In this document: positions 11,301 to 55,335 of the stretch, piece by piece
Position numbering within the stretch: the stretch's first letter is position 1
Layout of the letters: every line of letters begins with the position of its first letter
From: Diadema antillarum
Lineage: Eukaryota
Direction of reading: 5' to 3'
NCBI RefSeq assembly: GCF_040938485.1
Contig: NW_027270889.1
Span: 558,001 to 622,000, forward strand
Length of the DNA stretch: 64,000 nt
Notes under the pieces: generated by a model
Database searches by the model: none
What the model saw: only the letters and a program-made list of their open reading frames with translations
What the model was told of the DNA's origin: nothing
Made by a program: the position numbers and the translations under genes

Positions 11301-14300
11301 TTAATTATTCGTTCGGCTGCGGCTCCGTATAGCTCTGTGGCCGCTATATACAGGTTAAAATCTACTGGCTCTTCTCTAAAGGGGGGTCAGTGGCCGCATA
11401 GGTGGCCACTATAGACAGGTGGCCGCTAAGGCAGGTTTGACTGTATCTAATTACATTAGGATGTTTAGGAATTTCTGAACATTGATTGATAAGATCATGA
11501 ATGTGAGACTTTCCTCTCGTTATGTGAGAGTGAGTTGAAGAAGAATAAATTTGAAGACGAAATTCGCATCAAAATTGAATGTTTGTTTCCTCTTACTGTC
11601 CACAGCTGTGAAGATGGCTACAGGGGCCCCTCGTGTGAGGATTGCGTGCCGTTCGAAGGATGTGTCCATGGAAGGTGTGAGAACCCTGGTGATTGTATCT
11701 GCCGGCCAGGATGGGGTGGCGTCCTTTGTGACACAGGTAGAACAAATCATAACAATTTATAACAAAAACAACAACAATAACTACAACAACAACAGCAGCA
11801 GCAGCCGCAGCAACAACAACAACAGCAACGACAATAGGAGCAGCAACAGCAATATCATCAAAAACAACACCAACATCAACATCAACAACGTCAATTGAGT
11901 AGCCGTAGCAACAGCAGCAGCAGCAACCACAACACAATCCACCCAAACAAGAGCACAGAGAAACTCTCGCAAAAGAGTATGCTTGTCCAGGCAGAAGCCC
12001 GTGGGCAACGACTCGGGTGTAGAGTCTACCTGTGTGAGAAAATCTTTGGTAGATATCGCCTTTCCCAAATTCCCAAATATGACATTGTTTCACATACTTT
12101 AGTCCCGACAAAAGCAATTAAGTGAACAAAGAGTTGAAAATCTGTAAACCGTATACCGATCACCTAACAATCTCTATCATTATCATCATTCCCTACAAGT
12201 TTCTTTTTTTCAATAATTGTTATTATTGTTATCATATAGGGTGGAACATCCTATTACCGGACGCTTTTCTTTGTGGCTTTGAATTCCGTACTCATAGAAT
12301 GAAATTTCGGCTAAAAACAACACCACTTATTCACAGACTCATGGAAATTACGAATTCAGCCAACTTACGTCATTTCTTCGTTCCAGTTTTTAGAAAATAT
12401 GCTTCAAACATACCCCTCTAAAAATAGTGGTTTTTTGCGCCGTGCAAAATCGCATTGTATTACCGGACGCTATTTTCGTAATCGAATAATCGAGGTCTTT
12501 CGCACCTAATCCTTGCACCAGAATCACAATTCATCCCACAAATCACCGTACACATTCTCACCGAGCGGATGACACAAAAAAAAAAAAATCTGCAAATGAA
12601 GCTCAAATTTCGTATTTTACAGTAAAATGTCTGTCTTGACCATTTCGAACAGTTCACGCAATAAAACCTTGTGAGAAATCGACAACTGGTTAGAGTATAC
12701 GTGCTTTGTCTATGGGAGCTGCACGCGCGGGTGATGAGTTGCGTGCCCCTTGCGCACAACTATTCCGCATCGTTCGCGTTTGAGGACGATAGCTACAATT
12801 TTTCCGATATTGATTAGTGAACTTTTGGTTCTAATAGAATCTTCAGCATTTTTCCTGTATATGAGTGGGATTTCATAGAATTTCAGTCGCGAAATGTGAT
12901 TCAAACATGCATAAATATTAACTATAAGCGAGGTGCGGGTCACTCAACTATAAATTTGAGGTAAAATGTGAATTTTTTCGTGTTTTTACATTTTTATGTG
13001 GCGTTTTTTGCGATTTCGGTCCACACAAAGTTCTGTGAGGGTAATCTACGAAGTCTCGCGCGTACAGAAATGTCATTAGTACGCAAAAATGTGCGTGTCC
13101 GGTAATACCATGGTGTCCGGTGACACCATGCTTGCCTATACTATTGCTATCATTACCATTACCTTATTACCAAAAATGCTACTGCTATGATGATCGTAAT
13201 CATTGTTGCTATTGCTGTTATCATTATTAACAATATTATCAGTATGACAATGATAATTGATTTTTTTTTCTATTTGTCTCGGAAAGAGCTCGTAAGCAGA
13301 TGTCCGGTTGTTGCAGCCCCTCCTCATGGGAACTTGACCTGCACGGAGGATAGGGTCATCGGTTCGGTGTGCACACTTCAGTGCGAGGAGGGGTACAGGG
13401 TGCAGGGGCCCCCGGACATTTCTTGCCTGGAGACAGGCGAGTGGGACACTTTGCCCCCACAGTGCGAGCGTAAGTGCACCCTCGAGTGAGCAATGGACTC
13501 GATGTAACGTCACATTGTGTCGAAGCTGACACAAGATGGCCATACCTTCGCAAGGTCTTTGGGCAAGGTTTTGGCTTGCCAAAAGATTTAACCAAACCAA
13601 ATCTTTTGGCTTGCCAAAAGATTCAACCACTGTGCATAAAGTTGCCGGAGTTTGTGAAACTCCACGGACGGTCATACGATCAAATATCCTCGTGAATGAC
13701 CCGATGTTTACACGATCAGAACCAATTCCGAACACTTTCTTTTTATTGTGTGTCAATCTTTCTTTGCTCGATTTCGGGACAGTGTGACGACTGCATAATA
13801 TATAGCCATACACGTATCCACGTATTGCAGGCATATTGATTTTACGTTTCCCAGCTTGGTCCTGACAAAAGCAATCATTGAAAAAATTGTAAACCGTTCA
13901 TTCATCCCGTATACTATTAGNNNNNNNNNNNNNNNNNNNNNNNNNNNNNNNNNNNNNNNNNNNNNNNNNNNNNNNNNNNNNNNNNNNNNNNNNNNNNNNN
14001 NNNNNNNNNNNNNNNNNNNNNNNNNNNNNNNNNNNNNNNNNNNNNNNNNNNNNNNNNNNNNNNNNNNNNNNNNNNNNNNNNNNNNNNNNNNNNNNNNNNN
14101 NNNNNNNNNNNNNNNNNNNNNNNNNNNNNNNNNNNNNNNNNNNNNNNNTCATTATCATCATTATCATCATTATTATATATCTATCATTAGAACAACACTG
14201 TCAGCATTTCTCCCTTTTTCGTATTTGTCTCGGAAAGAGCTCGTTAGAAGGTGTCCAGCTGTGAATGCCCCGCTTCGTGGAAATTTGACTTGCACGGAGG

Positions 14301-17300
14301 ATAGGGTCATCGGTTCTGTGTGCACACTACAGTGCGAACAGGGGTACAGAGTCCAGGGACCGTCAAACATCTTCTGCCTAGAGACAGGCCAATGGGACAC
14401 GATGCTTCCCCACTGTAATCGTAAGTGCGGTCCACGAACAACTGTGCGGTGGATGAAAATTCTAATGAAGGTGGTATCACATATCATCTTCTCGAGAAAA
14501 TCAATATGTGAGGCTAAAGCATTTTACAAGATTTATAGAGATAGAAGTTTTCAAATACCATGTCTCCATTCTTTGCGTCGTCCATAAATTAAGCCTTCAC
14601 ATTGATTTTGCATTCAGAGAATTTATTCAACAGCTGATCATCATAATAATGCGGAAGCTCAGTAGTGCCACAGAGAAAGTTTTTTTTTCTACTTCTCGAG
14701 CTTTTCGGGGCCGACAACGAAAGCATAAAACGAAATGTTAGATCTTGTCTTTTGGACTGAGAAAAGGGGATTGCTAGTAACTGATCAGTGGGAATCAGTG
14801 GGGATGCTGGGAGGTGATTGTTCCAATTCTTGTGGGATTCACTTAAGATTAGATTATACAGCATATCTATTGTTGTGTGAAAATTATTTGCTTCAGAACG
14901 GTCTCATATTCAAGTAATGTGCAGTTTAATGCCCCGTCACTGTGCAGGCCGCCTGATAACCTGGAAACATTAAGCTGCACATTACTTGAATATGAGACCT
15001 TTCTGAAGCAAATAATTTTCACACAAGTACTCCTAAATGAATCTCACAAGGATTTTAACAATCATCCCCCAACATTCCCACTGATTCCCACTGATCAATT
15101 ACTATAGCCATCCCCTTTAATATTTCCGGTGGTGAAATGATGAGAAGGCAAGATGCTATGGCTATGACATCTAACCCTCTCGACTTTTCGAACCCGTAAC
15201 CCTTTCTTTGCCAATGAGTCAAATGTGCACAAATTTTGCACACAAACCTATTAATAGGTAATGAAGGTGGCATTCAGAGTTTAAAAGTCAGGAAGGCGAG
15301 AAACTATCCATTCTTCTCAGAGGCACCTATAAGCTTCCGTACTGATTCTAAAGTTGCGTGTGTCTGGACAAGAGTCAAGCACCTATCCAATCACCATCTA
15401 GTCAACCATCAAGAAGGGGTAAAAACAACATAAAATTCTTAGAAGTGTTTGAATTATTCAAGGTCTTCTTCCGGACCTATTTGTAAAATTGGTTAATAAC
15501 ATGATTTGTTTTAGTGAGAAAACTAACACCCCCAATAAAACCCAAATCGCCTTGTCATTATCAAGGTTTTACTGCTGTATTTGATGGCATACGATTAAAT
15601 ACATCTTAGGTCATGCACATGCATCTGTCGATTTCCGCCCTGTAGGGATCCGGTGCCCTCCATTGGAGCAGCCAGCCCACGGAGAACTGATGTGTCCTTC
15701 GGGAAACATGAGAAATGTTTTCGATGCCGTCTGTACTGTCGTGTGTGACGAGGGCTATACCAGGCAGGGCCAGAGAAACTCCGTCCGTTGTCTTGAGACG
15801 GGCCAGTGGGACTCCACGGTGGAATGCGAGAGTGAGCTTGAAAAGTTTGAATCTTAACTTTTCTAAAATGTTTACGTTCATCATTGATCTCAACATCAAG
15901 ATTTTACGATTCAGGCAGGAGGTACTAATAATGGCTAAGTTATGGTTTTCCTTTAAAATTAGGGCTCCTCTCCTCCAACAAAGTCATAAGTTATCATTAC
16001 CAGAATTTTGATGGTCTGACTTTCTCCAACGTTATCGGATTAAGACTAGTGAAGAGTCACATGTCTGTGATGCTATCGGAGTAATTAATTTGGGAGACGG
16101 TCACATTTAAGTGGTCTTTTGACGCGTAACCGGAATGTCCAAGATCTATGAATTCTCGAAGAAAAGATGATTTAGATTTAGAGTAAAAATTGAGGTTTGT
16201 TTAAAATCAAAAGATTTTTTTTTCTTCCCACTGTTCATATAGTGAGGTCTGAAACATTTTGCAATATGTGTGTACATATGTCGTTTTGGTACACATCAGA
16301 AGTTTTGATCGGAAGTTAATGAGAGAGTAACGTGATCGACAGTATCATATCCTCCAAGTCTGTTTTCTAAACACGTCCTGTACTAACATCTCGTGTAGAA
16401 ATTGAGACAGCAATTTATCATTGCAAAGCTTGGAAAATTAGAATAACAAAAGCTGAAATTACTGTTTGGTGACCTAATTGGGCTTTTCTGATGTCATGAG
16501 AGAGATTGAAGTTGAGAAAAGGAGGCACGAAAGAAAAATTATTATCAAGTCCATCGTCTTCCAAGTAGATAATAAGATTTTGTTCAAACTTAATTTGAAA
16601 GAAACTTGATGCAACTGAACAACTTGTGACAGAAGAAAACAGTAAAGATGAACAAAAAACACTTTCAAACATTACTAGCATCACTTTACTATATCGGCGC
16701 TTTTTTGTTCTCGGGTAATCAGATAGTGTTTCATTGAAGCTGTCCTTTTGTTTTTGTCTGGTAGTTGAGCGTTGTGACGTTCTACCTCCACTTCCCCTCG
16801 GCAGCATGAAGTGCACCCAAGATAACGTTTTTGGTTCCACTTGCGTCTTTGCGTGTGACGATGGTTTCCAACTGAATGGACCTTCTTCCAGGGAGTGTGA
16901 TGCGTTTGGCTCCTGGTCGCAGTACCAGCCAGTGTGCGAAGGTGAGACTATAATAAGGCTTGACATTCTGGCTAATTCATCCTCTCCTCCTCCCCCTCCC
17001 CTCTCCATCCCTTCACTATCATTCTCTCTATCTAGGCCCCCTACACATGTCTTCCTCGACAGACAACAAGCACTACCACCCCTTCCTTCACCTCATTCTT
17101 CTTCTATTATTATTACCACTANNNNNNNNNNNNNNNNNNNNNNNNNNNNNNNNNNNNNNNNNNNNNNNNNNNNNNNNNNNNNNNNNNNNNNNNNNNNNNN
17201 NNNNNNNNNNNNNNNNNNNNNNNNNNNNNNNNNNNNNNNNNNNNNNNNNNNNNNNNNNNNNNNNNNNNNNNNNCTATTACTACTACTACAACTACTAGTA

Positions 17301-20300: not shown

Positions 20301-23300
20301 CGTAGGTGCCGTGCACAGAGCAGCGTTTTAGATGCATTATGGGATAGCACATGGGACAAACTTGCCCCGGTTTTGGCTGCGCATGCACTTATATCACGCT
20401 CTGTCTTTATAAAGAGGTATTTTTTGTTGAAGATTTCTTCGCTTTCCATCATGTGACCAGCACAATGAAGCCTTGCAGTAGTGAGCCATGACTCTAGTGA
20501 CCGCAAATCAGTAAAGCTTAGACACTTTCAACTCTTTTAAAGGGATTGTATAGTTTTGGTTGAGACCTTATTTCAGGTTTCTAACATTTTTGGTGAGATA
20601 ATGAGAAACCTCTTATAAAATATGGAAGAGCATGTAATTCTATGAGGAATTCAACGTTCATTTGATGAAAATTGGTTTTGAAATGGCTGAGATATCCAAA
20701 AAAGAGTGATTCTAATAAAGTGTGGGACCCACACTTTATTACGATCGCTTTGTTTTACTTTGTTTTTGGATGTTTCAGTCATTCCAAACCCGATTTTCAT
20801 CAAATAAACTTTGAATTCCTCTTAAAATTGTATGTTCTGTACTATATCATAAGTGTTTTCTTCGTATCTCGCAAAAAGTTAAAAGCCCAATTCTCATCTC
20901 CACCAATACTGTACCATCCCTTTAAGCTGAATTATAGCCAAGAAAAAAGGGCTAGCAACTGAAAAGCAGACAAAAAAAACTCCATTGAATCGTATGGGTA
21001 CTGCGACTCGCGTGAGACAACCGGAAGCGAACAAGGGACCGAGGAATCCCACAGTGCACCTGTGACAGAGCTCTTCAGCGTGCGCAGGAGTTTTTTACGT
21101 CATTGGCGATAGCGAGAATTAGGTGGCAACATCGATCTGTGTTCATACTCAGCTTCGATGAACAGAACAAAGCGAAACAAGCAGAACAGGGAAACATTGT
21201 TCGAGTCAAAAGACAGTGCCTTGAAACGATCATTTTTGGTCATATTGGAATGTACAAATTGAATGAGGTAATGATAATATCACTCCACATGTGTCTGCTG
21301 CATCTAAATTGTTGTTTCTTTTTTATAAAATCAATTACAAGAAAACATATTTCTTATCGATTTCCTTGAGAGCCGAGAGTGTAGCTATAACGACTTTGTA
21401 AAGTGAGAATTATATAAACTGCAAAATTGATTACCAAAAATGATTATCGTAACAATTTTTTTTTTTATACAAAGCAATGGCAGAGTTCCATCCTATCCTT
21501 GCTTCCTGAATCAACGATTGTATCTAATTTTCACACTCTGCAAGCCTAACAACGTTTTGTGTTTGAGTCAACTTGATATCTGGTCACAGATTCTTTCTGG
21601 TACAATGTAATTGTTCCAGTCGTAAAGAGGAAAGACAATGGTGATAGCTTGATATAGACCTCGCACGCATATGTAGTTTCTGAATGCTGTTTTCATCAGC
21701 TTTTGGGGGAATAAAATTATAAATGTTCTTCAAAATATTGTGCATACCATACTCTGGTTTTTGTCTGATTACCACAAATTTCGCTAGTCACATAGTCAAC
21801 GAAAGAGGTAAAAAAATGGCCTCCAAGAACACATCGTAATGTAGATGGTCTCCATGCAGAGAAATCGTCAACTTTGCTTCTTGAATCATTAAACAATACT
21901 AGCAATTGAATCATAAAGAATGTTTTCTTTCTTTGATTTAAAAAAAAAAAACACCACACAATAACAATGATGACCAGTCATCCGATGTGCCGAGCTGTCG
22001 AGTAGCGATAGCATGTCTATCAGCTGTTCCCATGGTAACCTGCTGGATTCTGTCTGTACCTTCTCGTGCGAGAGACCCGGAAGTTCTCTGGTTGGAGTAG
22101 AGTCGGTGCAGTGTGTCTACGAGAACGAGAATACTCGATGGAGCAACCCACTGCCCTCTTGCACAGGTGAGCACTCACCCAACCGTAGACGTGGTTCAGG
22201 AAGTTTGAACCTCAAACCTTGTCTCTGTAATTTTTTTTTTCTCCCTGAATTCGAACGTAATGATTCTTGAATCTGGAAGACACGGTATACGCAGGGGTAT
22301 CATAGAGTTTGAATGCTGATCCGGTTCGGATATATTCAAGAATCCCCCGTAATGAATTGTTCTAACATCGTTATTATGATTATATGTAAGGAACACACAC
22401 CGCTGGAGAATTTCGACTGAAGTCGACCGTTACCCGCCGGTGAGCGTACGCTTTGAAGCACGTCACATTTGTTGCACATCCATTCGAGCCAACATCTCCC
22501 TACATTACAGGGTGTACAACTCAACGCAGAACCTTGCCCATGATATTTTTTTTTTTACTACAATTACTTGTTTCCATGAATACGTGTCGGTCACAAACAG
22601 GAGTGTGATCGTTTCCATTCATAGCTACGAGATACTTAATTTGACTTTTAGCACACTTAGGAATCATTTTTACTTTGTGTTGTTTTTACTTAAATGCAGT
22701 ATAAGGAGCCTTTATCATCATGATAAATTATGTACATTTACAGGTCTTCAGCGTCCTGTCTTCAGGGATTGTCCGATGTCACAGGTGGTCGTAGCCAGTA
22801 ACAATAGCGAGTCAGCCGTAGTGACTTGGGCCCCGCCCATAGCAACGGACAACACCCTTAACGTTATCCCGGCTGTCCTCGTCATCGGACAGGGACCCGA
22901 GAGCGAGTTTGACGAAGGACTGCACATTGTGGTGTACAAGGCCAGAGACGCTTCCGAAAATCTTGCCTGGTGTAACTTTACCATCACAGTGCAAGGTAAG
23001 CGATTTATCATTAACAAAATAATGTTTGATTCCCACCCCCACCCCCTCCCCGCCCCTTGGTAAAGGCTCACATTCTAATTCACACCTTACAAGCCAAGAG
23101 TAACTTAGACCGGTTTCGCAGCATACGACGTGAGAATGAAAATGTAAAAAGAAAATAAAACAAAGGAAAACACCCTCTCCATTTTCCCTTTCTCCCACAC
23201 AACAAAGCCTACGTGTCTTATATCATCTTACTGTCATTTATTCTGATAGGTTCGGAAAAGCCAGTTTCTATATCATATTACATATCTTTTTAAAACTGAA

Positions 23301-42083: not shown

Positions 42084-43247
42084 CAACTGTATAAATATGT
42101 AAATACATAATTATCATACCGTGTATCCTTACATAATATATTTACATTGAATACATGCATGCATAAATACATAATCATACATAACGTTTAATTTAAATGA
42201 CTCAACTTGATCAACTTAAGCAGAATCACACACACACACACACACACTCAATGTAAAACATTCTACAACCTGCTCAAGATGCTGTGATCTCCCAATAAAC
42301 CACACCACGAACAGAAATGGGAAGGAACTCCACCTGAATAACGACAATCAAGACAAAATACTCATTGACCTGCTGTAAACTAAAGCAACAAGTAGACTCG
42401 TCTCATCACTGAACTTGACACTGTCAAATGATAATGATTTTGGGTGTTTAATACCTGTCAATGGTGCCATCCTCACCTCATATTAAGATGACATTACAAA
42501 ATAATTGAGGCAAAATTGGTGACGACACGTGTCTCTTACTGGCATAATGTGCGGATGCACTTTGGTTTTCATTATTGTTTTTTTTTTTCCTCCAGTTAAG
42601 TCGATGTTTTGCTTTGTATGGTTCATAGACCAGACTAACAGGACACTGGTGAAGTCCACACAACTCTAAAATGCTAAAAGAGCGGTGGTGACACTAAGAA
42701 CTACCCCCCCCCCCGCGTTTATCTTTATCCGTTCAAAAGAGGAAAAACGAACAACGTATGGAAGCCTGCACTTCCGTCTCCGAGTTGCGCCTATCGCTAG
42801 TCAGGGATGAATCACTGCTATGACCTGTCACAATGGGATAAAACGCTTTTGGTCTGGTAGAGGCGCATTACACTCCGCGATATGCCCCAACGACGCCACA
42901 CCACAGATTAGGAGGCTCAGTAATAAGCCTGCTGTGATACCAAGGACTGGTAGTTAGTTGAGAGCTGCTTAGCGTGAATGGTAAAACACTGGCACAGGAG
43001 TGTGGCAGTTTTCTTCGAGCAATAACAAAAGATTAAAGATCTAGCAGACATGAGAACTTCTAGCCGGCAGACTGAAGGAGAACTGTGGTTTGATTTTGAC
43101 GTGAGCTAGCAGTACGCTGGGATTGACATTGTTGGTGTTTATATGAAATTAATCTTGTTTGGATCTTGGATTGGTTTTTCCCGTCAGCAAACGAAAGCGT
43201 ATACTTTCATAGCACTTCGTTCCACTTGGATTACGTACGCCGTCACA

Positions 43248-45026
43248 ATGGTTAATCCTGTTTCTTTGTTCATTCGAACTGTCATCTGTTTTGGTTGCTG
43301 CTGGACATGTTTTGCAGTGAACACAGTTGAATTGCCCAAATTTAACGGACAGACCATCGATCTAGTCTGTGAACGACCCCAAGGAAGTCTCCAAGAGCCT
43401 TCGATGATATGGAGGTCCGTGAGTTCGGACATCCAACTCACGAGAGACGACTACATTTACCCGAACATTGGGGCGTTGTACACTCGAGTACACTTGTCAC
43501 AGACGTCATCGGCAAATGAGTACAACTTGCAGATCACTGATGCACACGAGAGTGACTCTGGAAAGTATCAGTGCGGTTATGAGTCGCCACAGGGGGCATT
43601 TACAGAAATAACCACTGTAAATGTCGTTGTTCTTGATTCGGAAATAACCCCAGAATGCAGTAGCAGGATATTACCAAGTGATGGACAGGCAGAGGGTGAC
43701 GAGTACGACATCAGTTGCAGATGGTCACGCAATCTGCAAAGTGGTCATGCTTTGATTTTCATAAATGGACAAGAGATAAAACCTGACGCATTACTGTTGG
43801 ACAGTGTGATCGCCCGCGCCGTCTTGACAAGCGATGACGTCGTCACATGTCAGCTGATTGACCCGGTAACCAGTGAGATAAAAACTTGCGAGAAGATCGA
43901 TCTACCACAGGATGGCTTGAAGGTTCGGACGGATCCTCTTGTTGCAGTAGTTTCTGTTGGGGACGATGCTGAATTCAACTGCACTGCTAAGGCGGACCGC
44001 GACATCGAGAGCTACGTTTGGATTCTCAGGGCAGATGCGGTTATCCGATTCCTCGGGCCCAGGATTGGTCGGTTCCGGACTGACGACGGTTCTCGTCGCT
44101 TGACTCTCCTCGCTCTTGAAGAAGAGGACGACATGCTATGGGTGAAATGTTCAGTCACAACAACGGATGGCAGCGTAGTTACGACCATGTCAGTCATACA
44201 CGTGCTGCCAGCAACCGTCGACCCAACGAGACGCGATCCCCAAGAACTGCCGAGGCGAACGACAACGCCAGTGCCGGTGACGTCAACGACGGCGATTGAC
44301 ATCGGGACCCCTATTCGCAATGTCACATACGTTTCCGAGGTTCCGACGCCACTTCCGGTGATCGTTATCTCTCTGGCCGCTGCAGGAGGATTGATTGCAG
44401 TCTTGATCATCTTGGGCGTGGTCTTGCTCCTGATCAGAGCTTTCAGGAGAAACTCCAAGCAGGTTGATGGGAACACAGTCAACACCAGTTGGGTGATGTC
44501 TACCCCGGAGATTGCCATATCGGACGAGGTCCCCGAGCCACGACGCTTCGGCCGCAAAAAGAGCCGCTCCAGCTCTAGAAAATTCCTGTATTCGCGGAGG
44601 AGCAGTAAGAAAAAGAATCGTACCAACGGATCTTTGCCAAACGTATCAACCGGGGTGACGACCCACTTGCCTCCACCTCAAATCATCCCCGATCCACGTG
44701 GTATCTATCAAAATATCCCCAGGAGCACATCCTCCTCATCCCTACAATCTATGCAAAGCAGGAATAAGATGCGTGCCGGGATATCGCACGGGTATGAAGA
44801 CGTAAAACCCGAGCCTCCAGACGTGATCCGCTACAAAAAGCCACGCCCCAGGCACCACCTACAGCTACGCCCTGGGGATGAGGGAGGTTACGCCTGTATT
44901 GAGAACCCCGACGAGGTTCCACCTATAATCTACGCGGATTTGGACCTTTCAGCGAGCCCGCCCGTGACGAATGCCAACAATGAGACTTTTGATCCGAGCA
45001 TCCTTTATGCAAAAGTCAATAAATAA
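43248..45026 (+). CDS. Single-exon type I Ig-superfamily receptor (592 aa): signal peptide, V-set Ig, two further Ig-like domains, Thr/Pro stalk, TM, tyrosine-motif tail with two ITIMs
   Basis: ATG 43248 in good Kozak context (acaATGg) followed by a hydrophobic signal; the upstream ATG at 43143 is less likely. V-set motifs DLVC..W..YNLQI....ESDSGKYQC; TM LPVIVISLAAAGGLIAVLIILGVVLLLI; tail IYQNI, GYEDV, GYACI, IIYADL, ILYAKV. Confidence 0.9.
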   Translation: MVNPVSLFIRTVICFGCCWTCFAVNTVELPKFNGQTIDLVCERPQGSLQEPSMIWRSVSSDIQLTRDDYIYPNIGALYTRVHLSQTSSANEYNLQITDAHESDSGKYQCGYESPQGAFTEITTVNVVVLDSEITPECSSRILPSDGQAEGDEYDISCRWSRNLQSGHALIFINGQEIKPDALLLDSVIARAVLTSDDVVTCQLIDPVTSEIKTCEKIDLPQDGLKVRTDPLVAVVSVGDDAEFNCTAKADRDIESYVWILRADAVIRFLGPRIGRFRTDDGSRRLTLLALEEEDDMLWVKCSVTTTDGSVVTTMSVIHVLPATVDPTRRDPQELPRRTTTPVPVTSTTAIDIGTPIRNVTYVSEVPTPLPVIVISLAAAGGLIAVLIILGVVLLLIRAFRRNSKQVDGNTVNTSWVMSTPEIAISDEVPEPRRFGRKKSRSSSRKFLYSRRSSKKKNRTNGSLPNVSTGVTTHLPPPQIIPDPRGIYQNIPRSTSSSSLQSMQSRNKMRAGISHGYEDVKPEPPDVIRYKKPRPRHHLQLRPGDEGGYACIENPDEVPPIIYADLDLSASPPVTNANNETFDPSILYAKVNK

Positions 45027-47025
45027 TTTTACATTTACTTATCTGTTTTGCCTTTGGATTTCCCGTTGAAGGCGAAGATATGACTTCAAAATGTGAGCAT
45101 AATATGAGCATTAAATATATCAAACAACTTTTAGGAAACGTTTGGACTTGACGTGATGATGAGATATTCTCACCAGTCTCGCAAAGCTGGAGTATACCAC
45201 CTCAGATGTCCGTGTGGTGTTAATGATAACGTCTCCTAAAGAGGAACTGACGCAATGATCAATAAAAATAATGCTTAAGACTACTGGAGTAGCTTCAATT
45301 CCACCACAAATTCCGTACATGAATTATTCCATAAAAATTCGTCTTGTTTTGATCGATACGTCTTGTTATCTATAAGTAATTTGTAAATATAAATTGTATT
45401 TATGTGAAGTGTGTACTTATATTAGAACGCGTTGTTCGTACAAAACAGATAGTCAAAAGAAGTGAAATACTCGTTCCTTGGATTTGTCCCCCGATGCGAG
45501 GAAACCGTTTTAAGAGTTAGTTTGTCACCTGCACTTTGTGTTCGTTGGAACACGTCATATAACTTTGAATTTATTTTCAGTAGAGATTTACTTATAAATC
45601 AAGCGTTTGTCAGGAGCAAGTTTTGCCATGTACAGGCCCTACTTGTAGATGAAAATGTTGTTGCATTACGTCATAGCATACCTTTGTAATTCAATTCCTG
45701 CCGGCGGGTGTGTATTTAGTGTGACATGAATAGTTTGCAACGTGCTTGCTCTTTAATTGTGTAATCTATATAGTTTATATTCCTTGCGAATAAGGATATG
45801 GTGGTCCCTTGACATTTAATGCATTGCATTCAAACAAAGTGTGTGATCAAATCAAAGAAGATAATCGTTGTCCCTTCTCAGTCTTAGGTCATTTGACGCG
45901 GCCATATGCCTGAAGTGACATATATTACGATTCATTACTGCCGTAGGATATCCACTTTGCGATATCAAGTCAGATTAAACCCATGCAATATAGACAGCAC
46001 AGTAGTCAGCCAGAACATTCACCTGTCAAAGGGTAGTAGAACCGGATATCGTCACCTTAAACAGCATCCTGGTTTTGCAGTCAGAACTGGAATTTGCCGC
46101 AACTTCTTTTTGTTGTTGTTATTTTTTTATCTCTCTCCCCTCTTCCTGTCTCTGTCATACAGATATGATCTTATCTTGTGTACAAGTCATGGCATTTCAT
46201 GTGTGCGCGTGTCCGTTTTCATGGAAATATTGCGTTTTGACACTGCAATCGGTGCCGCAGTTTAACTATGACATGTTAACGTGTAAAAAAGAAAAACAAA
46301 GTATGTTGTTTAAGAGGACTAGGTGAGAGCAATGATTCGCCCATAGAGGTTACAGGTTTCCTTGGTACATACGTTCACTTTGTGACGATGCGTCACTTTG
46401 AGTCCGTCTTTGCTCAGTGGCAGTTGAGATTTTTTCTTTTCTTTTTTAGCACTGCTTGGATTTAACCAAAACAAAAATTACAAACTGAAACCTAATTCAC
46501 GTGTACCCTGAAGTTCGGTGAATGCTAATTATGCTATTTTGTCATGATAGCGATTTGCTTGTTAATGTCAAGGTTTTATTGCCAAAAAAAGTGGCGATCG
46601 ATGGTTATCGATGGTAACGTCATTTTCTTTTTTTCCTCTTGATTTGTCTGTTTATCAAAGAGATAGTAACTAATACTCCCCTGTGTCATCAATCCGAGGT
46701 AAATTCATTGTCGATGAGCCATATCATTTCATGCACAATTCATTGTAGCTGACACATGCTCATCAAAATGATGGTTTATGAAAGAATAATTCTATAAATC
46801 GTTGGTAATGTGCTCTTTTGCCATACTCTTTTTTTCTAGATATTTCTAGCGTTTCTCGATTGTGAGTGTTCAGTTAAATAATTGGCCGTCGTTTAGTCAG
46901 TTTTCTTCAACAAATGCATAGTGGAGGTCAGGGATTCCGGTGTATCAGTAGCGAGAAAAAGATCCATGCTTTAAAGAAAATTCAATAACACTTTCTATAT
47001 ATTCCAGTTATATATAAATGGATAA

Positions 47026-55226: not shown

Positions 55227-55335
55227 ATGGAGCTATTCGGATTCAACCTGACAGCCGGGCGGGAAACGTACGTTCCAGGTGACGTGGTCAACGGTGAGAT
55301 CATTCTGCAGTCGAGCGCCTGCGAAGTCGTCGACG
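55227..55335 (+). CDS. Alpha-arrestin (ARRDC-like) first coding exon
   Basis: accATGg start; MELFGFNLTAGRETYVPGDVVNGEIILQ matches the arrestin-N start (Y.PG..V.G.V.L); gac g|GTgagc donor. Confidence 0.75.

Follow-up and report, generated by a model that had tools for sequence, protein, structure and literature searches.

The window analysed here is a stretch of 64,000 nucleotides from the sea urchin Diadema antillarum (NCBI RefSeq assembly GCF_040938485.1, contig NW_027270889.1, positions 558,001 to 622,000 of the forward strand), and positions given without a contig name refer to it. A single long open reading frame (ORF) of 627 amino acids (aa) was found in the ORF listing at 43143..45026 (+). 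Reading from the ATG at 43248 gives a protein of 592 aa followed by the stop codon (coding sequence 43248..45026, +). This is a real, conserved sea-urchin gene for a membrane receptor with three immunoglobulin (Ig)-like domains, and sequence comparison places it as one lineage of a large echinoderm-wide family of intronless three-Ig receptors. An earlier note, made from the DNA letters alone, had proposed an intronless inhibitory receptor with tandem inhibitory motifs of the immunoreceptor tyrosine-based type (ITIMs); the ORF, the tyrosine codons and the stop were re-read and all of its coordinates were correct. The features of the gene are listed in Table 1.

Table 1. Features of the three-Ig receptor gene in the window
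Feature	Position	Strand	Basis and remarks
Acceptor-like polypyrimidine tract plus AG, tttttcccgtcag	43175..43187	+	Sequence read; upstream of the ATG
Complete single-exon coding sequence	43248..45026	+	ORF; end-to-end colinear with single-exon L. pictus P0001
Signal peptide, aa 1-23	43248..43316	+	Hydrophobic, Cys-rich h-region; N-terminus of the orthologue also hydrophobic
Ig domain D1, V-like	43317..43634	+	Cys41-Cys109 (68 residues apart), Trp55, DSGKYQC; Pfam, AlphaFold2 strands, conserved columns
Ig domain D2, short, C2-like	43635..43913	+	Cys157-Cys201; AlphaFold2, family alignment
Ig domain D3, membrane-proximal, conserved	43914..44213	+	Cys245-Cys301, Trp258; Pfam ig, AlphaFold2
Pro/Thr-rich stalk, aa 323-366	44214..44345	+	One N-glycosylation sequon (NVT)
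Transmembrane helix, about aa 371-396	44358..44435	+	No charged residue; followed by RAFRR
Cytoplasmic tail, 196 aa	44436..45023	+	Seven Tyr, invariant in four orthologues
Polybasic, Ser-rich block (RRFGRKKSRSSSRKFLYSRRSSKKKNR), invariant, includes Tyr448	44538..44621	+	
GIYQNI, Tyr487 in conserved Y-x-N	44700..44717	+	Orthologues YQNI / YQNI / YVNL / YANL
ITIM 1, IIYADL, aa 560-565, Tyr562	44925..44942	+	Orthologues LIYAEL, VIYAEL
ITIM 2, ILYAKV, aa 585-590, Tyr587	45000..45017	+	Orthologues ILYAKV or HLYAKV; upstream F-D-P-S invariant
AATAAA, candidate polyadenylation signal	45261..45266	+	Sequence inference; ATTAAA also at 45110

The ATG at 43248 was preferred over that at 43143 because the alignment with the Lytechinus pictus orthologue begins at this Met, because the second haplotype has no in-frame upstream Met, and on account of its context, CACAATGG. 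The ATG at 43143, which thus has no counterpart on the other haplotype and would bury the signal peptide, was rejected as the start. The acceptor-like tract at 43175-43187 may mark the end of a putative intron in the 5′ untranslated region (UTR). Therefore, the term intronless stands for the coding sequence, which is one exon, and a 5′-UTR intron is possible.

The translated sequence, Pfam and AlphaFold2 bore out the proposed architecture of a signal peptide, a V-like Ig domain, two further Ig domains, a stalk, a transmembrane helix and a long tail, that is, a type I membrane protein with an Ig-like ectodomain. Pfam matched generic Ig models only: V-set (E = 1.8e-7), I-set, Ig_3 (E = 3.5e-8) and Ig_2 at aa 32-126 in D1, and ig (E = 1.3e-4) at aa 234-313 in D3. 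AlphaFold2, given a 42-sequence family alignment as input, predicted three beta-sandwich domains with a mean predicted local distance difference test (pLDDT) score of 90.5. The canonical Cys pair is present in every Ig domain, and D2 has an additional Cys pair, 137/214, which is almost invariant across the family. Pro, Thr and Ser together account for 19 of the 44 stalk residues. In the ectodomain, a V-like domain comes first and two C2/I-like domains follow it, a nectin/Fasciclin-3 (Fas3)-type layout for which orthology is not demonstrable.

The tail carries two copies of the consensus (I/V/L/S)xYxx(L/V/I) within the range of about 20-30 residues from each other. The codon of Tyr562 is TAC at 44931 and that of Tyr587 is TAT at 45006. 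A distance of 25 residues separates these tyrosines, and after the second motif come N, K and the stop codon, as the earlier note had described. A spacing of 25 residues is that of PD-1 Y223/Y248 and lies inside the 22-26 range of PECAM-1, PZR and SIRPα. The earlier note had made its reading depend beforehand on conservation of these motifs in orthologues. Alignment of the tails of four urchin orthologues (Diadema, L. pictus P0001, the urchin European Nucleotide Archive (ENA) contig L033 and the Logan contigs L042/L043) revealed that all seven tail tyrosines are invariant, as are the +1 Ala and the +3 Leu/Val of both ITIMs. Their contexts are FLY-SRR, within the invariant polybasic, Ser-rich block; Y-x-N; YE[DV]V; IxY[KS]KP; GYA; [IV]IYA[DE]LD; and FDPS[IH]LYAKV. 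When the tail was shuffled 100,000 times, 3.5% of the shuffles had at least two ITIM matches and 0.024% (2.4e-4) had a pair 18-32 residues apart with the second no more than 8 aa from the end, the test for pair and C-terminal position being post hoc; conservation is the stronger argument for the motifs.

The window gene has a 1:1, syntenic, single-exon orthologue in L. pictus. LOC135157725 (P0001, 604 aa) is its reciprocal best hit, is encoded by 1815 contiguous bases and thus by a single coding exon, and was the only database homologue of similar length in word-indexed searches with the whole protein and with the tail only. An exhaustive phmmer search returned paralogues and an urchin tail fragment, P0009 (in the 90% cluster of P0090). 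In both species the downstream neighbour is an arrestin-domain gene. Its first exon lies at L034:17825-17935 in L. pictus and has its match at window 55227-55337 (+); the latter is the first coding exon of the Diadema arrestin-domain gene, 68% identical over 37 aa. No orthologue from S. purpuratus, L. variegatus or D. setosum was present in the protein sets, to which this search was confined. Patiria P0020, which has the same tail ending, was rejected as an orthologue and is orthologous to a Diadema paralogue at C1436:425199.

Identity between Diadema and L. pictus is 34% in D1, 40% in D2, 61% in D3, 27% in the stalk and 61% in the tail, and the stalk of the camarodont orthologues is lengthened by PTLN/PTLD tandem repeats. 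Just after these repeats, the ENA contig (L033:4878-6753, ERZ26222911) has a frame break. It is probably a low-coverage assembly error, because in the Logan contigs L042 and L043 a single frame runs on across this site.

Both haplotypes are represented in the Diadema assembly, with a 98% identical copy of the window gene on C2907. Thirteen synonymous and 11 non-synonymous differences separate the alleles. The latter all fall in the ectodomain, seven of them in D2, and none in the transmembrane helix or tail, where a single synonymous change was found. The dN/dS between haplotypes is 0.27 overall, which is consistent with purifying selection, and 0.14-0.48 for the individual domains; with dN/dS below 0.5 in every domain there was no evidence of diversifying selection, in a test that is weak with only 24 differences. 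Heterozygosity between the haplotigs (window 43500-46250 versus L002, C2907) is blocky, at about 3% over the part coding for the ectodomain (43500-44250) and about 0.35% over the tail and the 3′ flank (44250-46250). Synonymous divergence (pS) is 0.053 in the ectodomain and 0.006 in the transmembrane helix plus tail (Fisher p = 0.011), and the low value in the tail may be ordinary coalescent variation.

The earlier note had postulated a phosphatase of the SHP type as the partner of the tail, and such a tandem-SH2 phosphatase is encoded in the same genome. Domain matches found two SH2 domains and a protein tyrosine phosphatase (PTP) domain in this order on one strand at C495:42172-61953, a locus mirrored on the other haplotype at C644:1534967-1554409. 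The SH2 exon L035:9747-9911 matches residues 47-101 of the N-terminal SH2 (N-SH2) domain of human PTPN11 (SHP-2) with E = 3.6e-33, ahead of PTPN6. The N-SH2 exons of this SHP-2 orthologue of Diadema (PTPN11/corkscrew type) match the human sequence very closely.

At least about 40 distinct loci of the receptor family are present in the Diadema genome, most of them twice as haplotigs, and they match the whole ectodomain at 22-33% identity in uninterrupted frames of 300-1180 codons. By exhaustive search the family was found in urchins, sea stars, brittle stars and crinoids, with members from Lytechinus, Diadema, Asterias, Patiria, Acanthaster, Amphiura, Anneissia and Antedon; the only non-echinoderm names among the search matches were generic hemicentin-like Ig-repeat proteins. 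The window gene has the family's three Ig domains with their Cys/Trp pattern and the extra D2 Cys pair, followed by stalk, transmembrane helix and tail, and its whole coding sequence in one exon. Gene spans likewise equal 3 x (aa+1) in L. pictus, Patiria (sea star), Anneissia (crinoid) and Amphiura (brittle star). In the 42-sequence alignment, the invariant or near-invariant columns are C18, W32, C86, C114, C134, C178, C191, C222, W235 and C278 (ectodomain numbering). Echinoderm members carry automatic names such as 'uncharacterized', kin of IRRE-like, nephrin-like, Dscam2-like, peroxidasin homolog and cell adhesion molecule 2-like (CADM2-like). They are true paralogues of the window gene, 20-30% identical over three Ig domains with a shared Cys pattern, single-exon in their coding sequences and in many cases with the same tandem tail; the names reflect generic Ig similarity only.

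Many family members share a tail end in which 'EGLxYADLDL' or a near variant is separated by 20-30 residues from an xYAx[ILV] placed within a few residues of the C-terminus. This design is present in paralogues from four echinoderm classes. Among 44 non-redundant family members with tails of at least 60 aa, 10 have the tandem C-terminal ITIM or immunoreceptor tyrosine-based switch motif (ITSM) design, where shuffles predict 0.04 and 0 of 2000 shuffles reach 10. In the ectodomain tree, members with the tandem design occur in both major clades, in at least five places forced by starred branches. The window gene and P0001 make up a separate lineage (SH-like approximate likelihood ratio test (SH-aLRT) 100), and every named member of the clade that holds this lineage is echinoid (SH-aLRT 99). 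No account of an echinoderm intronless three-Ig family was found in the full-text literature, with subscription papers such as those of 2006 on the sea-urchin immune repertoire outside the search, and the family is apparently undescribed so far.

Sequence searches, including Pfam, found no orthology to any named vertebrate family or adhesion molecule; orthology to a known non-immune adhesion molecule is what the earlier note had named as speaking against it. The best full-ectodomain matches of a Foldseek search of the PDB were neuroplastin, Necl-4, NCAM, DIPs, nectin-1, CD155 and CD22, with E values of about 1e-14 to 1e-11 and template modelling (TM) scores of 0.25-0.47. In VIA-align, Fab heavy chains (V plus C over D1-D2; Z 14.4, root mean square deviation 8.5 Å, 189 residues) tied with DIPs. 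The nearest language-model clusters, which are leads only, were arthropod Fasciclin-3 and chordate nectin-3, MUC18 and CD22. Judged from these predicted structures and embeddings, the matches do not discriminate between Ig families, all being generic Ig chains. Thus the likeness to SIRP, nectin and CD200R that the earlier note had seen holds as a generic Ig layout but not as family specificity.

Membership of the SIRP family, which requires a V-set and two C1-set domains, was rejected: there is no C1-set Pfam hit, the D2 cysteines are 44 residues apart and D2 has the extra Cys pair. For a nectin-like ectodomain the fold is compatible, with no C2-set_2 Pfam hit or family-specific sequence hit and with structural scores level with those of other Ig chains. 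The C-terminus is E/A-x-Y-V in nectins and EYFI in Necls. Membership of the nectin/Necl families was rejected on the C-terminus, ...LYAKVNK, which has neither the PDZ-binding motif that defines nectins nor the band-4.1 motif that Necls have in addition (PMC7286890).

Among known receptors, SHPS-1/SIRPα, PZR (MPZL1), PECAM-1 and PD-1 resemble the window gene in being type I members of the Ig superfamily (IgSF) with a C-terminal (I/V/L)xYAxL/V-type pair 20-30 residues apart. The first motif of the window gene has the form ΦxYADLD, like that of SIRPα, PZR and G6b, and its second lies a few residues from the C-terminus, like that of PZR, CD33 and SIRPα. The tails of SHPS-1/SIRPα, PZR, PECAM-1 and CD155, ΦxYA(D/Q)LD ... 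xxYAxΦ-COOH, follow the same logic as that of the window gene. However, outside the short motifs no homology to SHPS-1/SIRPα, PZR, PECAM-1 or PD-1 is detectable in ectodomain or tail. The window gene also differs from these four in its intronless coding sequence, its three Ig domains (V-like, then C2-like, with no C1-set) and a tail with five more invariant tyrosines and a polybasic block. In fold, the three-Ig ectodomain of the window gene is compatible with the V-C2-C2-like layout of CD155/PVR (Necl-5) and the nectins and Necls. CD155 has an ITIM in place of the PDZ ligand (PMC7286890), whereas the window gene has two ITIMs and a single exon.

Taken together, comparative evidence gives good support to a tandem ITIM pair that would be positioned for a tandem-SH2 phosphatase, and on balance we favour, by a modest degree of confidence, a phosphotyrosine-dependent contact receptor docking SHP-2. 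Its mechanism is best read, by analogy, as like that of SHPS-1/SIRPα, PZR/MPZL1, PECAM-1 and CD155. The course of events we infer, including phosphorylation, SHP-2 binding, ligand, cell type and sign of the signal, would be as follows. The fast-evolving distal domains (V-like D1 and C2-like D2) would bind a ligand on another cell or surface, and the slowly evolving D3, transmembrane helix and tail would pass the signal on through tyrosine phosphorylation. After engagement, a Src-family kinase would be expected to phosphorylate the tail, and pY562 (IIYADL) and pY587 (ILYAKV) would then bind both SH2 domains of urchin SHP-2. This would relieve the autoinhibition of SHP-2 and place the phosphatase at the contact site. 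Adaptors could be recruited by other invariant tyrosines, such as Y487, whose Y-x-N context conforms to the Grb2-SH2 consensus.

Several points weigh against the SHP-2-docking reading. Position -2 of the second motif is Ile, Ile, His and His across the orthologues, and HLYAKV, found in two camarodont orthologues, falls outside the strict ITIM consensus. The pattern [ILVS]xYxx[ILV] is itself loose and overlaps YxxΦ sorting signals. The enrichment of the tandem ITIM/ITSM design in the family overstates the support, since family members are phylogenetically non-independent. The only annotated orthologue is that of L. pictus, and the exact window protein is not in a collection of 15 billion proteins, so the gene is apparently unannotated in Diadema. 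Finally, docking of the SHP-2 type is not always inhibitory and can signal positively.

The main alternative is the one proposed at the outset, a coelomocyte receptor for inhibitory immune checkpoint control or self-recognition, which would counter an ITAM/Syk-type pathway (ITAM, immunoreceptor tyrosine-based activation motif) as KIR, LILRB, SIRPα and PD-1 do. It is consistent with the conserved tandem ITIM design, with the variability of the distal Ig domains (34-40% identity) and the confinement of all allelic amino-acid differences to the ectodomain, and with another family cluster in Diadema that has long-ITIM, short and tail-less variants and differs in gene content between haplotypes. 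ITIM receptors also have precedents among invertebrates, namely BbLcLRR in amphioxus (PMC8211107), a homologue of NCAM1, with SHIP2, in oyster (PMC11841013) and Alr in Hydractinia (PMC9546547). Like the window gene, these are non-vertebrate receptors with ITIM-type tails in genomes encoding SHP or SHIP, and Alr shares with the echinoderm family a V-set-like D1 and the organisation as a clustered multigene IgSF family (PMC9546547). The Alr genes are, however, multi-exon and alternatively spliced, whereas the echinoderm family is intronless. The precedents further differ from the window gene in ectodomain (leucine-rich repeats in amphioxus, Ig plus Fn3 domains in oyster and Hydractinia), come from different phyla and have no sequence relationship to the window family shown. 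Against an immune role, the window gene is solitary, with a 1:1 syntenic orthologue across Diadema and Lytechinus, there is no sign of diversifying selection in any domain, and the window lineage showed no activating partner of matching ectodomain in the Diadema genome. The checkpoint or self-recognition label was not upheld for the window gene, and we consider this role, a special case of the SHP-2-docking reading, unlikely; for a solitary syntenic orthologue under purifying selection, a conserved contact or signalling role (SHPS-1/PZR/CD155-like) is at least as good a fit as an immune one.

Somewhat less likely again is a homophilic or heterophilic adhesion molecule of nectin, Fasciclin-3 or MCAM type, whose multi-adaptor tail would give a positive morphogenetic output and for which SHP-2 would not be key. 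As part of this reading, and with equally low confidence, the tail could be an adhesion scaffold, with Grb2 at Y-x-N, an SH2 protein of Src/Csk type at YEDV and the basic block directed to the membrane or cytoskeleton. The conserved single-copy orthology is in line with such a role. The seven invariant tyrosines and the invariant polybasic block suggest more than one partner, and both the Foldseek matches (Necl-4, nectin-1, CD155, NCAM, DIPs and neuroplastin among the top ones) and the language-model leads point to adhesion molecules. However, the structural matches tie with unrelated Ig chains, and neither Pfam nor the exhaustive search gave a significant sequence match to any named adhesion family. 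The C-terminus ...YAKVNK is no PDZ ligand, and of all tail features in the family it is the tandem pair at the extreme C-terminus that is most widely retained.

It is improbable that the motifs are YxxΦ sorting signals, read by the μ subunits of AP-2 or AP-1 for endocytosis or lysosomal targeting and not for phosphotyrosine signalling. YADL, YAKV, YQNI and YEDV all fit YxxΦ, and a YxxΦ at the very end of the protein is reminiscent of LAMP-type signals, which counts for sorting. However, conservation reaches beyond what YxxΦ needs, to position -2, to the +1 Ala and to the flanks (VP..IYA[DE]LD and FDPS.LYAKV); the fixed-spacing pair recurs across the family; and a tail of 196 aa is far longer than typical sorting tails. 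An activating ITAM-like module, in which YACI-x10-YADL (Y548/Y562) in Diadema would recruit a Syk/Shark-type kinase, was rejected as highly improbable: the Diadema tail matches Yxx[LI]-x6-12-Yxx[LI] with both tyrosines invariant, but the spacer of 10 residues is outside the canonical 6-8 (or 6-9, PMC9546547), and the motif is not conserved as an ITAM because all three camarodont orthologues have Val at +3 of its first half (YASV).

In vertebrates, SHP-docking receptors with tandem ITIM/ITSM motifs have a central part in immune and contact inhibition, but documentation of their history before the vertebrates is sparse and consists of a few cases from amphioxus, oyster and Hydractinia. The locus described here, whose tail is conserved, whose presumed partner phosphatase is encoded in the same genome and which belongs to a phylum-wide family, is a concrete, testable echinoderm candidate. 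The signalling logic is familiar; the lineage, the intronless coding and the phylum-wide family seem to be new. Intronless genes are convenient for cloning and expression, and present annotation misses members of the family (in Diadema) or misnames them (nephrin-like, Dscam2-like, peroxidasin homolog).

Outside the window lies what we regard as the most interesting lead, a tandem array of highly similar intronless three-Ig genes at C128:1,160,434-1,282,641, with its other haplotype at C496:1,492,069-1,637,457 (loci L003-L006, L009-L016, L018, L019, L022, L025 and L032). Branches among the array genes in the tree are 0.05-0.11, and near-identical ectodomains are joined to sharply different tails. 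The long tails, of 390-450 aa, end in ...SHYADIGDVTYASVDDE, and the short ones, of 25-30 aa, end in NQIYAEVDQ or DKIYDNIDK; one member is tail-less and another, L006, has a Glu in the transmembrane helix. One haplotype has 10 loci and the other 13, counting fragments and one locus with an in-frame TGA. By analogy, this layout looks like that of paired receptors of the KIR/LILR type. A bolder, joint proposal is that the array would act as a KIR/LILR-like self/non-self system and that the tandem tail of the family would share ancestry with vertebrate tails of the SIRPα, PECAM, Siglec and PZR type. The ancestral family tail would then have been a tandem ITIM/ITSM of the form 'EGLxYADLDL ... xYAxΦ-COOH', not a convergent one, and we hold this combination to be doubtful.

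Elsewhere in the window, a multi-exon mosaic gene lies upstream at 10,000-32,000 (+), with a Sushi exon at 13856-14584 and a HYR exon at 22440-23060 identified by Pfam. The window also contains two runs of N, at 13921-14148 (228 bases) and 17122-17273 (152 bases).

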